From Macrostomum lignano (lineage: Eukaryota): 29,837 bases of DNA. The notes below the pieces were generated by a model, which saw only the letters and a program-made list of their open reading frames with translations, was not told the DNA's origin and did not search any database. This document shows, in pieces, positions 5,934-29,627 of this stretch. Position 1 is the stretch's first letter, and every line of letters starts with the position of its first letter. Both the position numbers and the translations under genes were made by a program. The stretch lies in NCBI GenBank assembly GCA_002269645.1, contig NIVC01002402.1, positions 1-29,837 on the forward strand, read 5' to 3'.

Positions 5934-16165
<10,232 letters not shown>

Positions 16166-17191: not shown

Positions 17192-17493
<302 letters not shown>

Positions 17494-18824
17494 TTGTCTG
17501 TATTTCGAATTTCCAGAGCGCCCTACTTTCTCAGAAGACTGAATAGTAGTATCTTTGGCATTAAAAATATATAACTCTACGAATTTTATTCAAAACAAAA
17601 GGAAAGAAAGCGAAATCGAAACTGCTACTTGTTCTTTGAGATCATCATCATTCTCCGTAGACTATACTTGGAAATGCATCACATACTTGAATACATTGCC
17701 ATCGTTACATTCATGTCGCAATTGCTTTGCTCCAATTGCCCTTTAATTAATGCCAGAGTGTACTATTATTATTAATTCAACTATTTACAAACAGCTATGA
17801 TAGCAGGGACAAGGAACTTTGGCAGCTGCGTATCGCAAATCGTTCTTAATCTTAAGGCTTATTGTCTTCTCAAAGGCATTTTGGTGGTACATACGGCCTG
17901 GGCTCGCACCCCACTGCTGTAGCTGTGTTCCCAACCCGCTGTAGCTGTCTCCCCCAGCTATAGCCGACCCTCTGTTGCTACAGGACTGTAGAACGACTCA
18001 TTTTAGATAAAATGGCAACTCAAATAAATCGGTTGGCCGCCCACAAAACTGACAAGGAGAATGAACTTCCATTTTTTCGTGAGCAAGCGAGCTTCGTAAA
18101 TCTGTCAGAACAGAGTCTGAATGTTTTACAGAGGCTCTCTTGTGACGTCTTTTTAAAGCTGGCTACTCACGAGATCCTGAATATTTTGTGAGCCTCATCC
18201 AGGCAGGCAGATAGGTAGACAGGCGAGCAGTTGTCATCGGCAACTCAAGTAGAAAGGTCGCGATTCTCTCGCAAAATCGTGCGACTCTTACTTTGCCTAA
18301 AAATCACTAGCTACAGTAAGAACTCCCAATCTCGCTACTGAATTTTACAGGTAAACCTTGCCTCATTTATCCGGATTAAGAATTAATTGTGCTCATCATA
18401 GTGTAAATTTGTTACCAAACAAAATACATTTGTATTTAGTTAGGTAAATAAGCATGTCAAGCAGAGAAGTACAATATGCCATTTAAATGATTGCTATCTT
18501 TCACATTAACCCACTGCTGATCGATATATTTACTTTGTTTATTTAAATGTCACACAAATCTAATTAAAAAATTTCCAGAGTCGCAGACTTTTAGGATCTT
18601 TTAAAAAATAAAGCCAAAAGAAACGGTCGGTCGCTGCTTGCATTAGGATGGCACGTAGCCCTCGGTTAAACATGCGCCAACTTTTCTGTTTTTAAACCCG
18701 GGGAGACTTGTTATTTTTGGTTAACAAGCATTAAAGATAAACAAATTGCGATGGATATTATCGTAGGATTTCTCGCTGACTTCATTCATAAACGGTGTTG
18801 GCTCGAGTTGCGCATGGCAACTAC

Positions 18825-19205
18825 CTACTGCGGCCGCTCATGCATGGCTCGCAGTTTCCAATAGAAATTTGAGCAGCCGCACTGGCAGGGCAGCTGCTGG
18901 TTGCCATAGTTATACCAGCTCGACTTGCACTTGAAAGCCGCCAGACAGAAGTGCCGGCAGATCATGCGCCAGTGGGCGATCACCTTGGCTGTAATCGGGG
19001 GGGGGGGCAATTCAGAGATGGTACACCTGCGTCAATTTAGAAGACACATGTGGCTAAGCCAGGACTCACCGTGCGCCGACGGTATAAACGACACGCGTTT
19101 GCTAGCGATTGAAAGGTTGTCGGTGTTAGTTGAATCTGCAGCGCCGTCCACTGCCACAGCGACAGCGCAGGCAAGAATGAAGCAGATGCCAACCAGGACT
19201 TGCAT
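18825..19205 (-). CDS. Small secreted cysteine-rich prepropeptide, 99 aa, two exons (19205-19070, 18988-18825); candidate antimicrobial/defensin-like peptide
   Basis: MQVLVGICFILACAVAVAVDGAADSTNTDNLSIASKR-VSFIPSAH|AKVIAHWRMICRHFCLAAFKCKSSWYNYGNQQLPCQCGCSNFYWKLRAMHERPQ*; GTGAGT donor (19069), C-rich tract + TTACAG acceptor (18990-18989), in-frame 81-bp intron; TATAAA upstream at 19315-19310. Confidence 0.72.
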
Positions 19206-19309
19206 TTCTGTCTCTATTGATCTATCGAGTAGCAGCTAAGGCCTTTGACTGATTCCAAATTTCCAAGTTTGCGCAGCAAAATCAGGCGCAGGGCAGCACG
19301 GGCGCTCAA

Positions 19310-19315
19310 TTTATA
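19310..19315 (-). promoter_or_regulatory. TATA box upstream of the cysteine-rich peptide gene
   Basis: TATAAA on the minus strand, 105 bp upstream of ATG 19205. Confidence 0.4.
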
Positions 19316-19747
19316 CTATTGATTTTCATCGATGCAGCCAATGAGAGCGCTAATGGGATGGCTGAAGGACGACTAATCGCAAGTGGGAGGAGCAAAGGAG
19401 AGACTGGCGGGGGCGGACTTCAATGAGGGCATGGACAACTACAGTAGAAAGACGTTTTACTCGCAAATCGTCCAAGTCACATTTGGAGGTTGGCTTTCAC
19501 ATTGCAAAACGGATGACAGACTTAGGAAGTGGGTTTAGTTTCTTTGCACCAAATTTCCTAAACCTCACCTTTACAAGTTTAGGTATATTTATTCCTGACT
19601 TATAATTTTTATTGCTTGTGCATATTACAAACTAATTTTGCTTCGTTTAAAAAATGTCCGAATTGTTATCCTTGCCACTGTAGGGTAGCAAGGCTGCCCT
19701 ACGTACCCGTCTGTGCGACGCGATTCTCAACGAGCGTTTAGCTGCTG

Positions 19748-20690
19748 ATGCCGCGAGCAGGACTTCCCACAGAGAGCCACGGATGGGGTTCTGACGACTC
19801 GTCCGATGGAGGGAGCAGCCGGCGGTCCAAGAGGGGTGGCACCTCTTTGGGTGGCGCGGCTCTGGATGTGGAGATCGAGCTCACCCGACGACGCATTGAA
19901 CTGCTAAGGCTGCAGAAAGAAGAGGCAGAGCTGCGACGGTCGGTGGACAAGGCACCAGATAATCGCGGTAAGCTACGAGAATTTTTTAGCCAGTCTGCTT
20001 GCGCTGAGTCTGATAGGTGGTCCAATGATGGTGAGCTTGATGCTGCCAATTTTGCTCCAAGCAACGCTAGAGTTTCATCTGGGCGGCTGCTCCGTATTTG
20101 CGACTTCATTGATGCCCCTGGCCAGGCTGATGAGCTTCTTTCGCAGGGTGAGACAGCAAAGCAGAATCTCAAGAGCGTTAGACCGAAATCTGTAGACTCC
20201 GTGACAGTCGGCCAATGGATTTCTGCCAATGCTAAAATCATGTATGCCATGCTGCAATCCGGACAGCTAGCGTCTCATGACACCGATAGTGAGCCAAAAA
20301 GTCTCTTGGACTACTTGCAGCACGTTATCCACATCGGCGATCTGCTTGATGGGGGGGTACGACTGGCAAGTCCTTCTTCGTTATGATGACGACCTGCGTA
20401 AGTTCCAGCATGCACACGGCTCCAAGTGGTCCCAGCCGCCTTTGTCTCTGATCTGTAAGCACCTGACGCGTGACGGCCCCAAAGAACCTTCATAGTCGGC
20501 AAGCCAGCCAGACTGGCCGCGGTGACCGCCGACAATTCGCTTCGCGAGGCCAAGCGGTCTGTGGACTGTTTAACAGCTCCACTGGATGTCAGAGACACCT
20601 GCAACTATCTGCACTGCTGTCGGATCTGTGGTGGCTCACATGCTGCTGCTAGCCACACCAACCGTGCTAATCAAGCAAAAAACTGAAAGA
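19748..20690 (+). pseudogene. gag-like ORF with three frameshifts
   Basis: Segments: ...WISANAKIMY...YLQHVIHIGDLLD / GGYDWQVLLRYDDDLRKFQ / ...VCGLFNSSTGCQR / DTCNYLHCCRICGGSH. Shifts near 20351-20357 (G7 run), about 20490 and about 20592. Confidence 0.75.
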
Positions 20691-20698
20691 AGCGCCGC

Positions 20699-23680
20699 AT
20701 GCGGATCCCATGCCTGCCTGCCTCCGACGTCGCTCAACCTGCCTGCCTGCCTGCCTCCGACGTCGCTCAACCTGCCTGCCTGCCTGCCTCCGACGTCGCT
20801 CAACCTGCCTGCCTGCCTGCCTCCGACGTCGCTCAACCTGCCTGCCTGCCTGCCTCCGACGTCGCTCAACCTGCCTGCCTGCCTGCCTCCGACGTCGCTC
20901 AACCTGCCTGCCTGCCTGCTTCCGACGTCGCTCAACCTGCCTGCCTGCCTGCCTCCGACATCGCGCAACCTGCCTGCTTGCCTGCCTCCGACGCTGCCAA
21001 ACCTGCCTGCTTGTCCGCCTCCATAATCGATCCTGCCTGCCGGCTAGCAAACGGCTGTCCTCCGGTCGATCCTCGTCGGAGCGGTGACCTCGTCGTGGCT
21101 GCTTGGGAGGAGCGTCTTCGTGGAGATCCGGACGAGAATTTCCTTGTCGACAGTCTTCGTGCTGGTTTTTCTTTAATCGACGACGGTTCTAAAGTGCCCG
21201 CCTTTGAGTCTGATAACTACCCGTCGGTGGAGGAGTTCAGACAGGAGGTCGAATGCCTGCTGCTTGAGGAAATTCGCAGGGGTAGAGTCGTGGTGGTTCC
21301 GGATCCGCCTAGCTTGGTGAGCCCGCTTGGGGCTATTCGCCAATCATCTGGTGGCGTCAGACTCATTCACGACTGCTCCGTCCCCCATAATGCGTCCCTC
21401 AACGACTGTTTCACCGCCGACCGCAAGCTTCGTTTTGCATCTGTCGAGGATTTCGTGCGTCTTCTTCGGCCAGGTCACTTCATGGCCAAAGTTGATATTG
21501 CTTCGGCGTATCGGTCCATCGCCTGCCACCCCAGCTGCTGGCCTCTTCTTGGTCTGAAGTTTAAGTTTTCCGGCGACGATCACGATACTTACATGGAAGA
21601 CCGACGCCTTCCCATGGGTTCTGCCGGCTCTGTTCCTAGCTTTCACCGTGTCTCTCAAGCCATTCGTCGCTTCATGGTCAAGGACGGCTATACCGCTGTA
21701 GTTAACTATCTGGATGACTTTGCTGTCACTGCCGCTACCTACAGAGATTGCTTCAAGGCCTATGACCACCTGCTAAGTCTTCTGGAGCACCTTGGCTTCG
21801 AGGTCAACCGTAAAAAGTGCACCCCGCCTTGTCAGGACATTGTCTTCCTCGGTATCCAGACAGACATCGGAGTCATGTCTCTGCCTCCGGAAAAGCTGCA
21901 GGAGCTGCGTCAGTTGCTCACTGATTGTCTTGCCGCTAGACAAGTCTCTGCTTCTTTCTTGCGTCGCCTCACCGGAAAGTTGAGCTGGTTTTGTCAGGTG
22001 CAGAGACAAATTCGCATGTTCCTTCGCCCCATCATCGAGTTTACCGAGAAGCTTAGTCGTGAAAATCGTCGAGTGCGCATTTGCGAGAGTTTGCGGCATC
22101 TTTTACAATTGTGGGAATCGGCCGTCAGGTGTTATCACGATCGTCTTATCTGGCCCATCTTCTCCGACGCTTTGGCCGTGGAAACTGACGCCTGCATCAG
22201 TGGCGGCGCTGCAATTCTCAGCAGTTGCTGCTTCCGCGATTGGTTTTTCGTTTATTTTTCCTCGGACTTGGATGGCCGTTTGGCCGATCTGCACATCAAT
22301 TACAAGGAGGCGGCTATCGCTCCTCTCACTCTGCTGCGGTTTCGTGACCAGCTTCATCAGGCCCAGGTGGTTTTCTACAGCGACAACCAAGCAGCTGTCG
22401 GCATGTTCAACCGGGGCTCTGCTAAGTGTCCTATCGTGAATGATCTTCTGATGCAGGCTGGGCTTGTCTGCATGCAGCAGCAGATCACTTTCAAGGTCTT
22501 TTACATGCCCGGTTGCCGCCAGTTCCTCGCTGACCCCGCCTCTCGTCTCCTGACGGGAGACGCTGCTCTGATTGATTTTGCCTCTCGTTTCTACGGTCAT
22601 TTGTTGATTGATCCCTCTGAATTTGCTTCGCATGCGCTGGGTCCTGCTTCCGCTTCCACCCTGTTTTTCAGGTGCCGCCTCCTTTGGGCTGCCAACCGAG
22701 CTGCTCCCTCTAGTTCGCGCCGCCTTCGCACCGGCGTCGCTGCGGTCGCTGGAAAGCAAATGGAGGATGTGGAGCGCTTTCTGCAGCGAGGCAAAGATCA
22801 ACGCTCTGAAGCCGACTCCGACTCAGATTTGCCAGTTCATCAACTTCCTCATGCACCATCGCTTGTCGCGGCAATCGAGCCTGCAGGCATACGTCAGCTC
22901 GATCGCCACTCTGTTGCGACTCAGCGACTCTCCGGTTACGACAGACTCTGGACTCGTGCGCTTGGCTCTTCGAGGTGCGAAGCGGCTGCTGGCCGCAACG
23001 CCCACTTGCCGCAAGGCTGCGGTGGGGCCGAGTCATCTTCTGCGACTGCGGCGCTGCCTGCAGCTGCAGACCGGCATTGGAGCTTCTCTGTGGAGCCTCA
23101 TCTTAGCCGGCTGGTGGGCGATGCTGCGGGCGGCCAATCTCTGCTCTGTCAGCCGGGCAAACGTCGGCACGGCGGTGCTGATCAGCGATCTTCGCCTGGG
23201 CGTCAAGGAGGCTCGGATTTCTGTTCGCCTATCCAAGACGAATCAATTCGGCGAGCACCGTCATGTCGTTCTTCTGCCCTGCATCTGCAAGAGTGCGACT
23301 GCTCCGCTGTGTCCGCTTTGTGCGCTCCATCATCATTTCAGCCGGAACTCTCTAGACATTGCCCCTCTTTCGCAGCCTCTGTTCTCTACCCTGCAGTCAG
23401 CAGGAAGCTGGATGAGCTTAACTGCAGCGCATGTCCGGCGCGAGTTGTCCCAGCTTTTTTACCAGGCTGGCCTTCCAAGAGACCGCTTTTCAATGCACAG
23501 CCTGCGCCGAGGCGGCGCCAGCTTTGCCAGGCGTTCAGGCATCGCGAGCGAGGATATCAAAGCCATTGGCGACTGGAAGAGCGATGCGGTTCATCTCTAT
23601 GCGGGCCGGCAGCCGCAGGTGGCCAGCCGTACTGTTCGTCGCATCGGGGCGGCGGTTCAGGCTGCGTTCTAACTGTTTAG
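20699..23680 (+). CDS. pol: Pol: reverse transcriptase + RNase H (993-aa ORF; the C-terminal ~357 codons overlap the YR frame)
   Basis: SPLGAI...GVRLIHDCS, MAKVDIASAYR, LPMGSAGS, YLDD (21707-21718); RNase H acidic motifs ETDAC, YKEAA, YSDNQ, LADPASR. Confidence 0.93.
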   Translation: MRIPCLPASDVAQPACLPASDVAQPACLPASDVAQPACLPASDVAQPACLPASDVAQPACLPASDVAQPACLPASDVAQPACLPASDIAQPACLPASDAAKPACLSASIIDPACRLANGCPPVDPRRSGDLVVAAWEERLRGDPDENFLVDSLRAGFSLIDDGSKVPAFESDNYPSVEEFRQEVECLLLEEIRRGRVVVVPDPPSLVSPLGAIRQSSGGVRLIHDCSVPHNASLNDCFTADRKLRFASVEDFVRLLRPGHFMAKVDIASAYRSIACHPSCWPLLGLKFKFSGDDHDTYMEDRRLPMGSAGSVPSFHRVSQAIRRFMVKDGYTAVVNYLDDFAVTAATYRDCFKAYDHLLSLLEHLGFEVNRKKCTPPCQDIVFLGIQTDIGVMSLPPEKLQELRQLLTDCLAARQVSASFLRRLTGKLSWFCQVQRQIRMFLRPIIEFTEKLSRENRRVRICESLRHLLQLWESAVRCYHDRLIWPIFSDALAVETDACISGGAAILSSCCFRDWFFVYFSSDLDGRLADLHINYKEAAIAPLTLLRFRDQLHQAQVVFYSDNQAAVGMFNRGSAKCPIVNDLLMQAGLVCMQQQITFKVFYMPGCRQFLADPASRLLTGDAALIDFASRFYGHLLIDPSEFASHALGPASASTLFFRCRLLWAANRAAPSSSRRLRTGVAAVAGKQMEDVERFLQRGKDQRSEADSDSDLPVHQLPHAPSLVAAIEPAGIRQLDRHSVATQRLSGYDRLWTRALGSSRCEAAAGRNAHLPQGCGGAESSSATAALPAAADRHWSFSVEPHLSRLVGDAAGGQSLLCQPGKRRHGGADQRSSPGRQGGSDFCSPIQDESIRRAPSCRSSALHLQECDCSAVSALCAPSSFQPELSRHCPSFAASVLYPAVSRKLDELNCSACPARVVPAFLPGWPSKRPLFNAQPAPRRRQLCQAFRHRERGYQSHWRLEERCGSSLCGPAAAGGQPYCSSHRGGGSGCVLTV
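20711..21010 (+). repeat. 33-bp tandem repeat (CCTGCCTGCCTGCCTGCCTCCGACGTCGCTCAA), about 9 copies, in frame in pol (PACLPASDVAQ)n
   Basis: Direct reading. Confidence 0.95.
22608..23672 (+). CDS. Tyrosine recombinase (YR) of the retroelement; start codon uncertain
   Basis: Catalytic set appears complete: MLR, SKTNQ, HSLRRG (about 23496-23513), GDWKS and the HLY tyrosine (23598-23600). Confidence 0.93.
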   Translation: MIPLNLLRMRWVLLPLPPCFSGAASFGLPTELLPLVRAAFAPASLRSLESKWRMWSAFCSEAKINALKPTPTQICQFINFLMHHRLSRQSSLQAYVSSIATLLRLSDSPVTTDSGLVRLALRGAKRLLAATPTCRKAAVGPSHLLRLRRCLQLQTGIGASLWSLILAGWWAMLRAANLCSVSRANVGTAVLISDLRLGVKEARISVRLSKTNQFGEHRHVVLLPCICKSATAPLCPLCALHHHFSRNSLDIAPLSQPLFSTLQSAGSWMSLTAAHVRRELSQLFYQAGLPRDRFSMHSLRRGGASFARRSGIASEDIKAIGDWKSDAVHLYAGRQPQVASRTVRRIGAAVQAAF

Positions 23681-24767
23681 CTGTTGAACTGTGTCTGTGG
23701 GGGCGTTAGCTTTTTCGTTCTTTTTTACCCCTGCGCTCTTGCCACCCCTTGTCTTGCCTCGTTCCTTTCCCCGCGGTTTAATTGAAGTAGAAAATTCGCT
23801 GAAACTGTACTTGCGTCCAATTCTCATTGACAGGATAAAGGGGGTTAACAAATCGAGATCCTGTCTAACGGAAACCGGAGACAAACAAGCTATAGTTTCA
23901 GCGTAAAATCTCAGCTACTCCTGTCTGTCTGGTGAATTTTTTCTAGAAGTATTTTACCGTGATCGAATTTGTCTATGGTGAAAGCCCATCCATCCAGAGC
24001 TATATAAAAACAGCGAATCTTTGCAAAATCTTTGACTAACTTGTGAGCACACCTCGAACTAAACCGCGCAAGTAGGTGATTTATTGGGAGTTGAGTGCAA
24101 AAGGAACTAAAAAACATCCTACTTTGCTAATGCGTTTTACAGCAAAAAAATCGAGCCTCCAGCAAAATTTACTCGATTTGCTGATTGCAGCTTCACGTGA
24201 TTACTTAGAGAGACATGAAAAATTACCTGTTCATGTGGCCCCATCCATATCTTTTCAGCGGGATTCTTTAGGTTAAAATCCAGCATTTTTAAAAGTCACA
24301 CAGATACTTGTCAGTTTTTGCGTCTTTCATCTTCGGTAGTTAACGAATATTTAATCAAATTAATCCGCATCTGGTGTGTCGGATGAGCAGGTCGGCAAAA
24401 CAGTCCATCAATAAGAAAATTGATTTTAAAAAATACTAATTTTTGAAATGGAGATTAACATGCCTGCAGGCTGTTCTTATGAGTTATTTTTCGGTTCAGC
24501 CTTTCAATCTTTCCTACCACCCAGAACAATTGACGTCATTGACTTGTGAGCCCGATCGTCAAATAGAGAGCAGTTTTTTTCAAAGGCAAAAAACTAACTT
24601 GTTGCAAACATCTAGCTAGCTTCACCGCTCCACCGAAGAGAAGCTAAGCAAGACTATTTGCGATTCCGAATAGCGGTTGAAGGAACTGCGAGCTTTGAAG
24701 AGTGCCGTCACCTCTTTGCATCAGGGGTGTGGCCTTCATCAACGTGTATTTGAGGTAGGCACCAGGG

Positions 24768-26944: not shown

Positions 26945-29627
26945 CTACAGTAGGCTTTCGCTGCCATAGAGAATATACCTGACCACCTGGCCAAACATGG
27001 AATTCAGTCTGCGAACTGAAGTCTCGTTAATCGCTGGACGACTAAATCGCCACAGGTGTAGCAGATGATTGTTGCGCCAATTCCACCTGGGTATTTTTGT
27101 GTTATTGGTGAGATCGCCGTACAGCATGCTCAGCTCCCGTTCGGTCCAACCCGGACGCGCAAAGGACTGGTTCTCCACTCGGCACAGATACGGATATCGC
27201 TGCCAAATCTGCTGGGGCAGCAGCACCGAATGCTGAGCCCACTGCCTGTCATCAAAAGTCTGGTAGAGCATGTACCACAGCATTAGGAAAACGTCTCCCG
27301 GCTTGGTCATGAAGGCACCGATGGTCAGACCGATGGACGACTCGCGGCCGATCACGCAGTCAAAACTGCAAAGTTTAATTGAAGATATATCATCTAGTTG
27401 TCTAGTAAATACAGTAGTCAATTAGTTAATAAACTCTTGGAAAACATGAACCAGGAAGTAATATCCTTCAGGCTTGTTCGCACAGCCGTCAAATAAGAAA
27501 TCAAATGAAACAACCGATGTTCGAGCTACGTACAAAGCATATGTGTCTACTTGTTTACAAGCAGGATGATTACGCGAAAAATGGCCTGGTGGCGGTGTGA
27601 ACTTGTCCTAGAGCCCTAAGTTCTCAGTCCTTAAGCTGTCCAACTCTCATAAAAGTCATTGGATTCGATTCCGCACAAAGTCACTTTGGGGGAGTCGTGT
27701 ACGTCGTACGATTCATAAGAACCAATCTACTTGACACAGAGCTATAGAGTGTGTACTTGGTGACATCAAGAAAGTCACAACTGCTCTACAACCCTGTGTG
27801 CTTTCGTGTACGAACTTACGTGTCTGTGCCCCATAGTCAAAAACGTTTATACTACTGTCCAATAGTATTATCTACTTTCACTTTCAGCACCACCCAAAGG
27901 CTCGTCGAGTCCGCGACTAGCTGCAGACTGTTACCGCTCATTTTGAGTTCAAATTTACTCACCGTCTCAGTGGTTGCAGAGAGCGCAAAGTCAATACGTC
28001 AGTGTCCAAAATAATACCACCGATGGTGATGCCAGTTTCCAGCTTCATCACGTCCACCTGATGCTGGATGACTCGCACGTTTCGATTGAACACTCGTTTA
28101 GGCAGCGGTCTCGTTGCTAGCAGCAGCTGGTTCTGCTTGCCGTGCGCAGTCAGATTACTTTTCAACTGGTGCCAGTAGTGCCCATCGGGCATAGCGCTGC
28201 ACCAGATGATGACGAAATCAGTTCCGGATAACCAGGCTGCGCTGAGGAGAGCCACGTAGTGGTGAAATTCTAATTCGACGTAGCGCTGCCTCGGATAGAA
28301 CAAGAAAAAATGTACAGCATTTGGAATTGGTTGCAGTTGGCTGCTACTCGCCCGAATTGCTGAGACGATCCGGTAAGCGCTGAGCTCACGACCGTCCATG
28401 GTTCGAAACTGGTGACCAGCTAGGTTCAGCCCGTCCGGATAGTACTCCGACAGCAGAGGAGCCACTTCAATCGAAAGAATAGGAAAATTATAATCTTTTA
28501 GAGCTATCAACACAGTAATACTTAAAGTACTCCATGTATAGCTATGCGTGTAAAGACGTAGCTTTTATGCTCAGTTGAAAAATACCCCCCACCCCTATTT
28601 TAAGAATCGCTGTACAAGGCTTTCCAGACACTAAAGGCATGCACATCTCTATTGGCCCAAACTTTTAAATTTTGCGTTCAGTAAAAAAGTCGCTGTCTGA
28701 GGCATATATAGTATAGGTTTCTACGCTCGTACTTACTCAGCGTGTTGGTTACAACGTTAAAATCTGGTGCAGTAGAGACTGGCAATGCTGCAGTGTAATT
28801 GCTGCTCAAGCTCAGTCTTACCTCATCGCACTGAAGGTGTCAGCCTACATGACTTTAACTATTACTGTTCCTGCGTTTCTGGTTTTACAAAATGTGAGCA
28901 TTGGCATATTTCTTCAACTGAGCGCAAAAGATATTGTTAGTAAAAAATAGTTATATACTCTTAAACCACTTTAAAGCTCACTTTCAGGTAGGTTATTGAC
29001 ATAGATTTTATTTTGCGGGATTTAATCGATCACTTTCCCGGACATATTGCAAGGATTATTGTATGCATCTAAATAAGCGAGCTTCTCTCTTCTCTTCCTT
29101 CGTGACTCGAGAAATTTCTTAATGAAATTTTTTCTATGGTAAAAAGGGGGGCTTCGCCCCCACACCCACAGCAGGGGCTTCGCCCCCACACCCCCATCAC
29201 CAACTTCAACCATAGACATACAAATATGGCTCCGGGATTTATCTGAATACATCCCGCAAAATTAAAGTAGTTTAAATAAGATATTCTATGGTATTCTATG
29301 ATATTCTATCTATCTATATCTATATCTATATTAGAGTTACTTGCCTTTATTACTAGGTTTTACCGTGTTTGCGAGCTCCAGAAAGACGCCCGTTTCGAAG
29401 AGGTGACGCAAAATCTCTCTCGAGGAATTTTGATGCAATGGCTCGTTTAACAAAGTCAATTCACCTGTGTTGCTGTTGATGCTTGAAAAGTTTGAGTCTG
29501 CGTACCAAGTCAGCAGGTTTAGCTTCTTGTAGTGCAGTCTTTTGATCAACACAGTCGCTATGGCGCTTATTACCAGCACGGCTGTAACTAGCTTTAGTCG
29601 TGACAGAAGGCGAAACTCTTGCGGCAT
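26945..29627 (-). CDS. Type II membrane glycosyltransferase with DXD motif (Gly_transf_sug/GT32, alpha-1,4-GlcNAc/Gal transferase-like); exons 29627-29345, 28503-27963, 27365-26945; 414 aa
   Basis: N-terminal TM segment LVTAVLVISAIATVLI; IPNAVHFF; HQVDVMKLE; GGIILDTDV (DXD); R|FDCVIGRES...WAQHSVLLP. Intron 2 is GT-AG phase 2; intron 1 is in frame only with a GC donor. Confidence 0.85.
28965..29271 (+). mobile_element. 307-bp MITE with TTAA target sites (piggyBac-like), in intron 1 of the glycosyltransferase
   Basis: TTAA|ACCACTTTAA (28961-28974) ... TTAAAGTAGT|TTAA (29262-29275); subterminal inverted repeats ATTTTGCGGGAT / ATCCCGCAAAAT. Confidence 0.82.

Follow-up and report, generated by a model that had tools for sequence, protein, structure and literature searches.

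A two-exon gene for a predicted secreted, cationic six-cysteine peptide from the flatworm Macrostomum lignano

A short minus-strand segment of the genome of Macrostomum lignano, a free-living marine flatworm (Platyhelminthes, Macrostomorpha), appears in a prokaryote-style list of open reading frames as two separate ORFs of 57 and 61 amino acids. Do these two frames belong to one spliced gene, and if so, what does the gene make? The segment lies within a window of 29,837 nt, the whole stretch of DNA analyzed here (contig NIVC01002402.1 of assembly Mlig_3_7, GCA_002269645.1, positions 1 to 29,837), to which all coordinates refer. A preliminary description of the window had read the segment as a hidden gene for a secreted peptide and as the candidate first member of a new antimicrobial family. 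We examined the gene model, its genomic copies, the predicted product and the search for relatives, and weighed the proposed function against other readings.

A spliced and already annotated gene

When 19205-19070 (136 nt) and 18988-18825 (164 nt) of the minus strand are joined, the resulting 300-nt frame translates into a 99-aa precursor, MQVLVGICFILACAVAVAVDGAADSTNTDNLSIASKRVSFIPSAHAKVIAHWRMICRHFCLAAFKCKSSWYNYGNQQLPCQCGCSNFYWKLRAMHERPQ*. Coding exon 1 (19070..19205, minus strand) opens with ATG at 19205, comprises codons 1-45 plus 1 nt, and ends at 19070, where GTGAGT follows. It encodes the predicted signal peptide, an acidic spacer, a KR site and the beginning of the C-terminal domain, and it equals the annotated CDS of PAA58189.1. 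The intron (18989..19069, minus strand; GTGAGT...AG) is 81 nt long and of phase 1, splitting the codon for Ala46. Its 3' end consists of a C11 polypyrimidine tract and then GATTACAG, giving the full form GTGAGT...(C)11GATTACAG. Coding exon 2 (18825..18988, minus strand) supplies what remains of the 62-aa cationic domain, including its six cysteines, and closes with the stop codon TAG at 18827-18825.

Other ways of reading the transcript truncate the product. A message that retained the intron would stop after 57 aa, and one spliced at the alternative acceptor at 19028-19027 (exon start at 19026) would stop after 60 aa, the early stop foreseen in the preliminary description. The two-exon structure proposed there is borne out: we reproduced both the 99-aa frame and the 81-nt GT-AG intron, and the same exons are annotated and occur in three genomic copies.

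The gene is hidden solely relative to the prokaryote-style ORF list, and the earlier word "hidden" does not otherwise hold. An identical 99-aa protein is deposited as GenBank PAA58189.1 / UniProt A0A267EBK7 under the title hypothetical protein BOX15_Mlig016917g3, called at exactly 18825-19205 of NIVC01002402.1, and both GenBank and UniProt have listed the gene ever since the 2015-2017 assemblies. Because the identical protein is annotated at the same coordinates, the spliced reading is more than chance. The sole inputs to the assembly annotation were RNA-seq assemblies guided by the genome and a transcriptome assembled de novo (StringTie, TACO, MLRNA150904; PMC5730564), with ORFs called by TransDecoder (PMC5730564). 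Since it is transcript-derived, the 19070/18988 junction already has transcript backing. The gene model is correct.

Several further database entries surround this one. In UniRef, A0A267EBK7 shares one entry with another M. lignano record whose sequence is the same, and related A0A1I8 entries in UniProt are separate M. lignano predictions, which we take to stem from an earlier assembly. One frameshifted UniProt prediction, the first 41 residues of which are the same as those of the precursor, is named "Secreted protein".

Elements expected of a short transcription unit flank the coding exons. An inverted CCAAT box (ATTGG; 19338..19342, minus strand) sits in a block that is near-identical across the three copies and, judging from its position, would act as a putative element of the proximal promoter. 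A TATAAA box (19310..19315, minus strand) lies 105-110 nt 5' of the ATG and is invariant in 3/3 copies. The annotated transcript of the copy designated g1 starts 60 nt 5' of the ATG, ~45 nt downstream of the TATAAA box, and from that gene model we set the 5' limit of an approximate 5' UTR at 19206..19265 (minus strand). An in-frame TAG occurs 11 codons before the ATG (upstream translation WKFGISQRP*LLLDRSIETE), and the start codon stands in the context GACAGAAATG, with A at -3. Downstream, ~285 nt past the stop codon, an AATAAA (18538..18543, minus strand), kept in 3/3 copies, is a putative poly(A) signal.

Three copies, their surroundings and constraint on the frame

Two loci elsewhere in the genome carry the gene: g2 (PAA88211.1 on NIVC01000199.1; annotated gene length 383 nt) and g1 (PAA94439.1 on NIVC01000010.1; annotated gene length 440 nt, including the 60-nt 5' extension). 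We compared window positions 8825-29205, as reverse complement, with both. The g2 locus shares 98-99.9% identity with the window across about 12 kb; for the g1 locus, identity is about 94-96%. In g1 and g2 the frame is intact and the exon junctions are the same, and the annotated gene lengths agree with those junctions. The ATG, the GT/AG sites, the KR site, all six cysteines and the stop codon are invariant in the three-way alignment, as are the TATAAA box, the ATTGG box and the AATAAA. Variation in the size of the poly-C tract accounts for the differing intron lengths (81 nt in the window copy, 83 nt in g2, 80 nt in g1). No further paralogues were found by tblastn in the window or in the g1 and g2 loci. 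Three copies fit with the genome of M. lignano, which two papers describe as duplicated and neopolyploid (PMC5730564; PMC10733133).

The differences among the copies are few and unevenly distributed. Exon 2 differs at 1/164 nt from g2 and at 3/164 nt from g1. Across the coding sequence, where non-synonymous sites make up ~78% of the total, we counted 11 substitutions, 7 synonymous and 4 non-synonymous; pairwise dN/dS comes to about 0.1-0.2. Divergence from g1 is 1.3% in the CDS versus 4.2% in flanks and intron (Fisher p = 0.016). Two of the four amino-acid changes fall inside the pro-region and one lies six residues after the KR site. This pattern fits a constrained coding sequence, on small counts (n=11) and with gene conversion possible; the copies duplicated recently and are still 94-99% identical, which leaves the signal of selection resting on those 11 substitutions and liable to blurring by gene conversion.

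These data also bear on the most deflationary reading, that the locus holds a young ORF that is transcribed but has no function, its frame kept only through the recent duplication of the three copies. Copies this similar (94-99% identity) have had little time for decay, no homologue was found outside M. lignano, and we found no expression or phenotype records. Nevertheless, the synonymous excess (7 versus 4) and a CDS less diverged than its flanks argue against a functionless frame, as does a coherent design of signal peptide, pro-region and six cysteines behind a TATA promoter. We consider a functionless ORF improbable, and favor a lineage-restricted gene under coding constraint.

The surroundings are repetitive. 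Micro- and minisatellites abound in the window, and a search of it against Rfam returned no matches. Oriented divergently to the gene, a 4.7-kb retroelement (window about 19578-24249) starts 373 nt upstream of the ATG. Its ORFs comprise a 212-aa gag-like frame and a 993-aa frame with a reverse-transcriptase match; by eye, a tyrosine-recombinase-like C-terminal motif (HSLRRGGAS...GDWKSDAVHLY) is present as well, on which basis we regard the element as DIRS-like. It is present in the window and g2 loci and absent from the g1 locus, which has the gene together with its 370-nt promoter block. The gene is thus independent of the retroelement, and we rejected the idea that it is a by-product of it. 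A Na+/Ca2+-exchanger gene is found downstream on the same strand, with large minisatellite arrays in its introns.

A predicted pre-pro-peptide and the search for its relatives

In its layout the product resembles a classical secretory pre-pro-peptide that carries a cationic six-cysteine domain. Residues 3-19 are hydrophobic, with Kyte-Doolittle values of 2.2-3.0 over residues 1-17, and hydropathy together with the -3/-1 rule predicts a signal peptide of residues 1-19 (coding region 19149..19205, minus strand). The -3/-1 rule is satisfied at several sites, with candidate cleavage after residues 18, 21 or 23, and the n-region has no basic residue. The spacer spans residues 20-37, contains three Asp and, in the window copy, an N-glycosylation sequon. 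It ends in the dibasic pair Lys36-Arg37 (AAA CGC; 19095..19100, minus strand), a candidate pro-peptide cleavage site conserved in 3/3 copies. Cleavage there is a guess, as the sequence ASKR is not a furin consensus. The 62-aa C-terminal part holds 4 K, 4 R, 4 H and 1 E (net +7, pI 9.5), along with 3 W, 3 Y and six cysteines spaced 3, 5, 13, 1, 1. Our recomputation from the sequence returned the composition given in the preliminary description (hydrophobic N-terminus, spacer with 3 Asp, KR, 62-aa cationic part), and the translated product confirms the spacing C-x3-C-x5-C-x13-C-x-C-x-C.

These features suggest a route from gene to peptide. A TATA-box promoter would drive a short mRNA. The hydrophobic 17-residue N-terminus is predicted to target the protein to the ER and then to be removed, and a subtilisin-like pro-protein convertase may cut off the acidic spacer at Lys36-Arg37. 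Such a cut would free a 62-residue peptide of net charge +7 with three disulfides. The most economical pairing would join C56-C80 and C60-C82 as a CxxxC-to-CxC staple, plus C66-C84, and the peptide would act extracellularly. From the sequence we infer secretion, KR cleavage, disulfide pairing and function alike.

Database searches place the precursor among no known proteins. In a word-indexed search of 5.8 billion protein clusters, the matches were all M. lignano entries. Full HMMER over 1.84 billion representative proteins found no accepted relative outside M. lignano; it matched the protein itself, two frameshifted M. lignano predictions, which we assign to the older assembly, and one 6209-aa bacterial repeat protein, which we discarded as a compositional artefact because of its W/Y/N/G-rich repeats. 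Pfam searches with any copy at E <= 10 gave nothing significant and no defensin, toxin or macin family. A phmmer search against all PDB chains, a space that would include deposited defensin-type peptides, gave 0 matches at E <= 10. The gene is an orphan as far as these protein, Pfam and PDB searches reach. Of the earlier proposal of a new antimicrobial family, the lack of a known family holds in the HMMER, Pfam and PDB searches; what speaks for the antimicrobial label is generic architecture.

One database name points elsewhere. UniRef calls g2 and A0A1I8IHM5, copies 97-99% identical, "WSC domain-containing protein", which would make the peptide a truncated or degenerate carbohydrate-binding domain. 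By eye, ICRHFC...WYNYGNQQLPCQCGCSNFYWK resembles KREMEN1 TCISFC...FAGMESGYACFCGNNPDYWK: CQCGCSNFYWK and CFCGNNPDYWK are identical at 6/11 positions, a CxxxC lies upstream in both, and BLASTP of the peptide against the KREMEN1 WSC domain aligned 11 residues at E = 0.07 for a single comparison. Yet no copy matches PF01822 at E <= 10. A profile HMM that we built from 7 real domains (KREMEN1 and a fungal chain from the PDB, and PF01822-annotated proteins) scored the peptide at 0.6 bits, a value equaled or exceeded by 1465/5000 composition-matched shuffles (29%), and hhalign, aligning 16 columns, put the probability at 0.4%. Both the N-terminal GC strand and the half of the domain with the C-terminal C..C.G....CGG are missing from the peptide, and nothing WSC-like is encoded downstream. 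On the results from Pfam, the profile HMM against shuffles and hhalign we reject WSC membership, and we give a degenerate WSC protein almost no weight. The UniProt name for these near-identical copies is unsupported and looks like a borderline automatic profile match.

A second lead came from the KR site: pro-hormone convertase substrates typically have such a dibasic pair, which would suit a hormone or neuropeptide precursor cut at that position. Pfam Somatostatin matches g1 weakly (CPNFYWKL versus CKNFFWKT; 13.8 bits, E = 0.057), and the motif is located close to the precursor's C-terminus, as it is in somatostatin. However, 13.8 bits falls short of the 20.3 bits that Pfam sets as its cut-off, and no match appears for the window copy. 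There is no second cysteine after the motif to close a somatostatin ring, no basic cleavage site directly before it, and no amidation signal. Flatworm neuropeptides are short and amidated, and a 62-aa product with six cysteines is unlike them. We therefore treat the somatostatin-like motif, which is below threshold and wants the ring cysteine, as chance, and rate a neuropeptide precursor as quite unlikely.

The reading we prefer is that of a genuine, transcribed and already annotated two-exon gene, lineage-restricted so far as seen, that encodes a secretory pre-pro-peptide; we put its probability at about 0.8. The gene is an ordinary lineage-restricted secreted peptide gene, an orphan among secreted cationic cysteine-rich peptides.

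Candidate functions and likeness to known systems

What might such a peptide do? The leading single guess is host defence, in its fullest form an antimicrobial peptide that founds a new flatworm family and whose disulfide ladder is mytilin-like or CS-alpha-beta-like. The order of its parts, from signal peptide through acidic spacer and KR to a cationic cysteine-rich domain, is in favor. There are also parallels in known systems: the pro-segment of insect defensin precursors ends in KR, and mytilin carries a CxxxCxxxC...CxCxC ladder. Both halves of the diagnostic motif are present here, CxxxC as C56-RHF-C60 and CxC as C80-Q-C82, in a combination that is short and common.

We used AlphaFold2 to model the 62-aa part. 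The model has a helix at 7-27 that holds the CxxxC, a beta-hairpin at 33-36/39-42, the CxCxC, and a helix at 47-59; it is weak (pLDDT 63.8, pTM 0.39) and drew on what was effectively a single-sequence alignment. A CxxxC in a predicted helix, followed by a hairpin and CxCxC, would be the order suited to a helix-to-strand staple. However, a Foldseek search of the model against the PDB found no CS-alpha-beta match (best E = 4.2, unrelated), and its extra C-terminal helix is foreign to that fold. The predicted helices are no more amphipathic than shuffled controls, and the cysteine count and spacing are unlike both mytilin and the canonical six-cysteine CS-alpha-beta pattern. Neither the PDB (E <= 10) nor the Pfam defensin, toxin and macin families offered a sequence match, and our search of the literature on Macrostomum antimicrobial peptides found nothing relevant.

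The earlier likening to mytilin and CS-alpha-beta folds thus comes down to the CxxxC...CxC motif: PDB, Pfam and Foldseek are negative, the cysteine framework differs, and the structural comparison relies on a low-confidence model (pLDDT 63.8). A CS-alpha-beta fold is compatible with the data yet unsupported. Given the negative PDB, Pfam, fold and amphipathicity results, antimicrobial function is one plausible guess among several. From sequence features we would call host defence in general plausible but tentative, and its combination with a mytilin-like or CS-alpha-beta-like ladder and a new family slightly more doubtful still. Less likely again is the narrower proposal that the 62-residue domain founds a flatworm-specific three-disulfide host-defence family whose ladder is independent of mollusc mytilins and arthropod defensins.

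About equally likely as host defence is a glandular or reproductive secretion unrelated to immunity, for example a product of seminal-fluid (prostate), shell- or cement-gland, rhabdite, mucus or pharyngeal gland cells. A small orphan protein that is predicted to be secreted suits this possibility well, and 3/4 amino-acid changes among the copies lie at or near the pro-region. M. lignano has many lineage-restricted, fast-evolving, reproduction-related secreted transcripts, according to two studies (PMC5977470, PMC7336406). Against a gland role, Mlig016917 was not found in the supplementary tables searched of reproduction-gene papers, which may be truncated or use other identifiers. In the texts and supplements searched of M. 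lignano papers, we found no mention of Mlig016917 and no expression, tissue or induction record for it.

If the peptide is antimicrobial, it would add a gene-encoded, disulfide-stabilized defence peptide to a phylum with poorly catalogued effectors; to our knowledge, few gene-encoded antimicrobial peptides have come from platyhelminths. Were the founder-family reading true, platyhelminths would gain a cysteine-stabilized effector of their own. M. lignano is a model with transgenesis and RNAi, which makes the function of the peptide directly testable.

Comparison with known systems sets the peptide apart to different degrees. Somatostatin and cortistatin (PF03002) share a local motif with it, C-[SP]-N-F-Y-W-K-L in the peptide against C-K-N-F-F-W-K-T, but here the motif is embedded in a six-cysteine domain, with neither a ring-closing cysteine nor a preceding processing site. 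The likeness to WSC domains (KREMEN1, PDB 5FWS; yeast Wsc1, PDB 7PZ2) extends to a helix-type CxxxC, an aromatic/Gly stretch and CxCG, and with KREMEN1 in particular to a local CxCGxxx[DF]YWK. WSC domains, however, span about 80-95 residues with eight conserved cysteines, and the peptide misses half the domain and four cysteine positions. It resembles the lineage-restricted secreted proteins of Macrostomum in being short, with a putative signal peptide, no detected homologues outside the genus and duplicated copies; unlike gland proteins of Macrostomum, Mlig016917 is tied to no gland by an expression pattern.

The comparison with mytilin and the defensins is the most extensive. Mytilin has eight cysteines spaced 3/3/4/11/1/1/2, whereas the peptide has six spaced 3/5/13/1/1. 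Canonical CS-alpha-beta peptides follow C...CxxxC...C...CxC, with one cysteine before the CxxxC that the peptide lacks. The peptide is 62 aa long, against 34-40 aa in mytilin and CS-alpha-beta peptides, and has the additional predicted C-terminal helix. Its acidic segment is N-terminal, in contrast to mussel precursors, where it is C-terminal. Like mytilin and the defensins, though, it would derive from a precursor that includes a signal peptide and an extra, putatively removable segment; like mytilin and the CS-alpha-beta peptides, it has a CxxxC in a predicted helix and then CxC(xC); and like mytilin and the insect defensins, it is small, cationic, disulfide-rich and predicted to be secreted.

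Divergence among the gene copies

The window copy of the peptide gene and its g2 counterpart (PAA88211.1) differ in a patchy pattern at window positions 19040-19150. No differences are found in the 400 nucleotides upstream, compared with six of 136 in exon 1, three of 81 in the intron and one of 164 in exon 2. Wherever g2 departs from the window copy in exon 1, at each of the six sites, the third copy, g1 (PAA94439.1), carries the same base as the window copy, and the amino-acid changes around the g2 pro-region are N30D, S32P and S43L. This pattern suggests that the stretch around the pro-region of g2 either is a gene-conversion tract or has changed faster than its surroundings.

The intron of the peptide gene also varies in length. 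Its acceptor is preceded by a polypyrimidine tract of pure poly-C (18997-19007), which reads C11, C12 and C9 across the three gene copies, and it is the variation of this run that gives intron lengths of 81, 83 and 80 nt.

A retroelement upstream of the peptide gene

A 4.7-kb retroelement occupies approximately 19578-24249 on the forward strand and begins 373 nt before the ATG of the peptide gene, in divergent orientation. It encodes a gag-like ORF of 212 amino acids (19748-20386, forward strand) and an uninterrupted ORF of 993 amino acids (20699-23680, forward strand) that matches RVT_1 with E = 9.5e-10. We consider the element DIRS-like because a tyrosine-recombinase-like motif, HSLRRGGAS...GDWKSDAVHLY, was spotted by eye in its sequence. 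A search for terminal repeats, with the settings applied, detected none. The element is present at the window locus and at the g2 locus but missing from the g1 locus, and we therefore regard it as a recent insertion.

Within the 5' part of the 993-aa ORF, a 33-nt tandem repeat (20711-21022; 9.5 copies, 95% match) codes for the repeated peptide PACLPASDVAQ. Colipase-like and Mucin-like Pfam matches in this ORF are spurious products of that repeat.

The exchanger gene, tandem arrays and other ORFs

Downstream of the peptide gene, and on the same minus strand, lies a gene of the Na+/Ca2+-exchanger family (PF01699) that spans window positions 1 to ~15731, with one exon, for example, within 7887-8351. 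Its annotated product of 654 amino acids extends past the fetched locus, and the g2 locus also has an exchanger neighbour. Very large tandem arrays punctuate this side of the window: 78 copies of a 24-nt unit (559-2428), 258 copies of (AGAT)n (10222-11255), ~122 copies of a 17-nt unit (12000-14039), 39 copies of another 17-nt unit (14761-15443) and 75 copies of (ATCT)n (17192-17493). The last separates the exchanger gene from the peptide gene, and the arrays up to ~15731 fall inside the range of the former. In the six-frame list, such arrays give long spurious ORFs.

Two further minus-strand ORFs, of 158 and 184 amino acids, lie at 26945-28513. The second weakly matches the DXD sugar-binding region (PF04488) with E = 0.004, its score of 18.3 bits falling short of the 23-bit cut-off, and the pair may represent glycosyltransferase exons. 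A forward-strand ORF of 104 amino acids that overlaps the peptide gene in antisense (18925-19239) most likely arises as a side effect of that gene's coding-strand composition.

Automatic names and a somatostatin-like motif

UniProt names two gene copies (A0A267GQ91 and A0A1I8IHM5, 97-99% identical) automatically as 'WSC domain-containing protein', unlike the window copy, which is an 'Uncharacterized protein'. None of Pfam, hhalign and the profile and shuffle tests supports the WSC name.

Residues 84-91 of the peptide (18840-18863) form the motif C-S-N-F-Y-W-K-L, which is C-P-N-F-Y-W-K-L in g1. A short match to the WSC domain of human KREMEN1, CGNNPDYWK, overlaps these residues. The motif also resembles the somatostatin core, C-K-N-F-F-W-K-T, and the g1 variant alone gives a Pfam somatostatin match, at a sub-threshold score.
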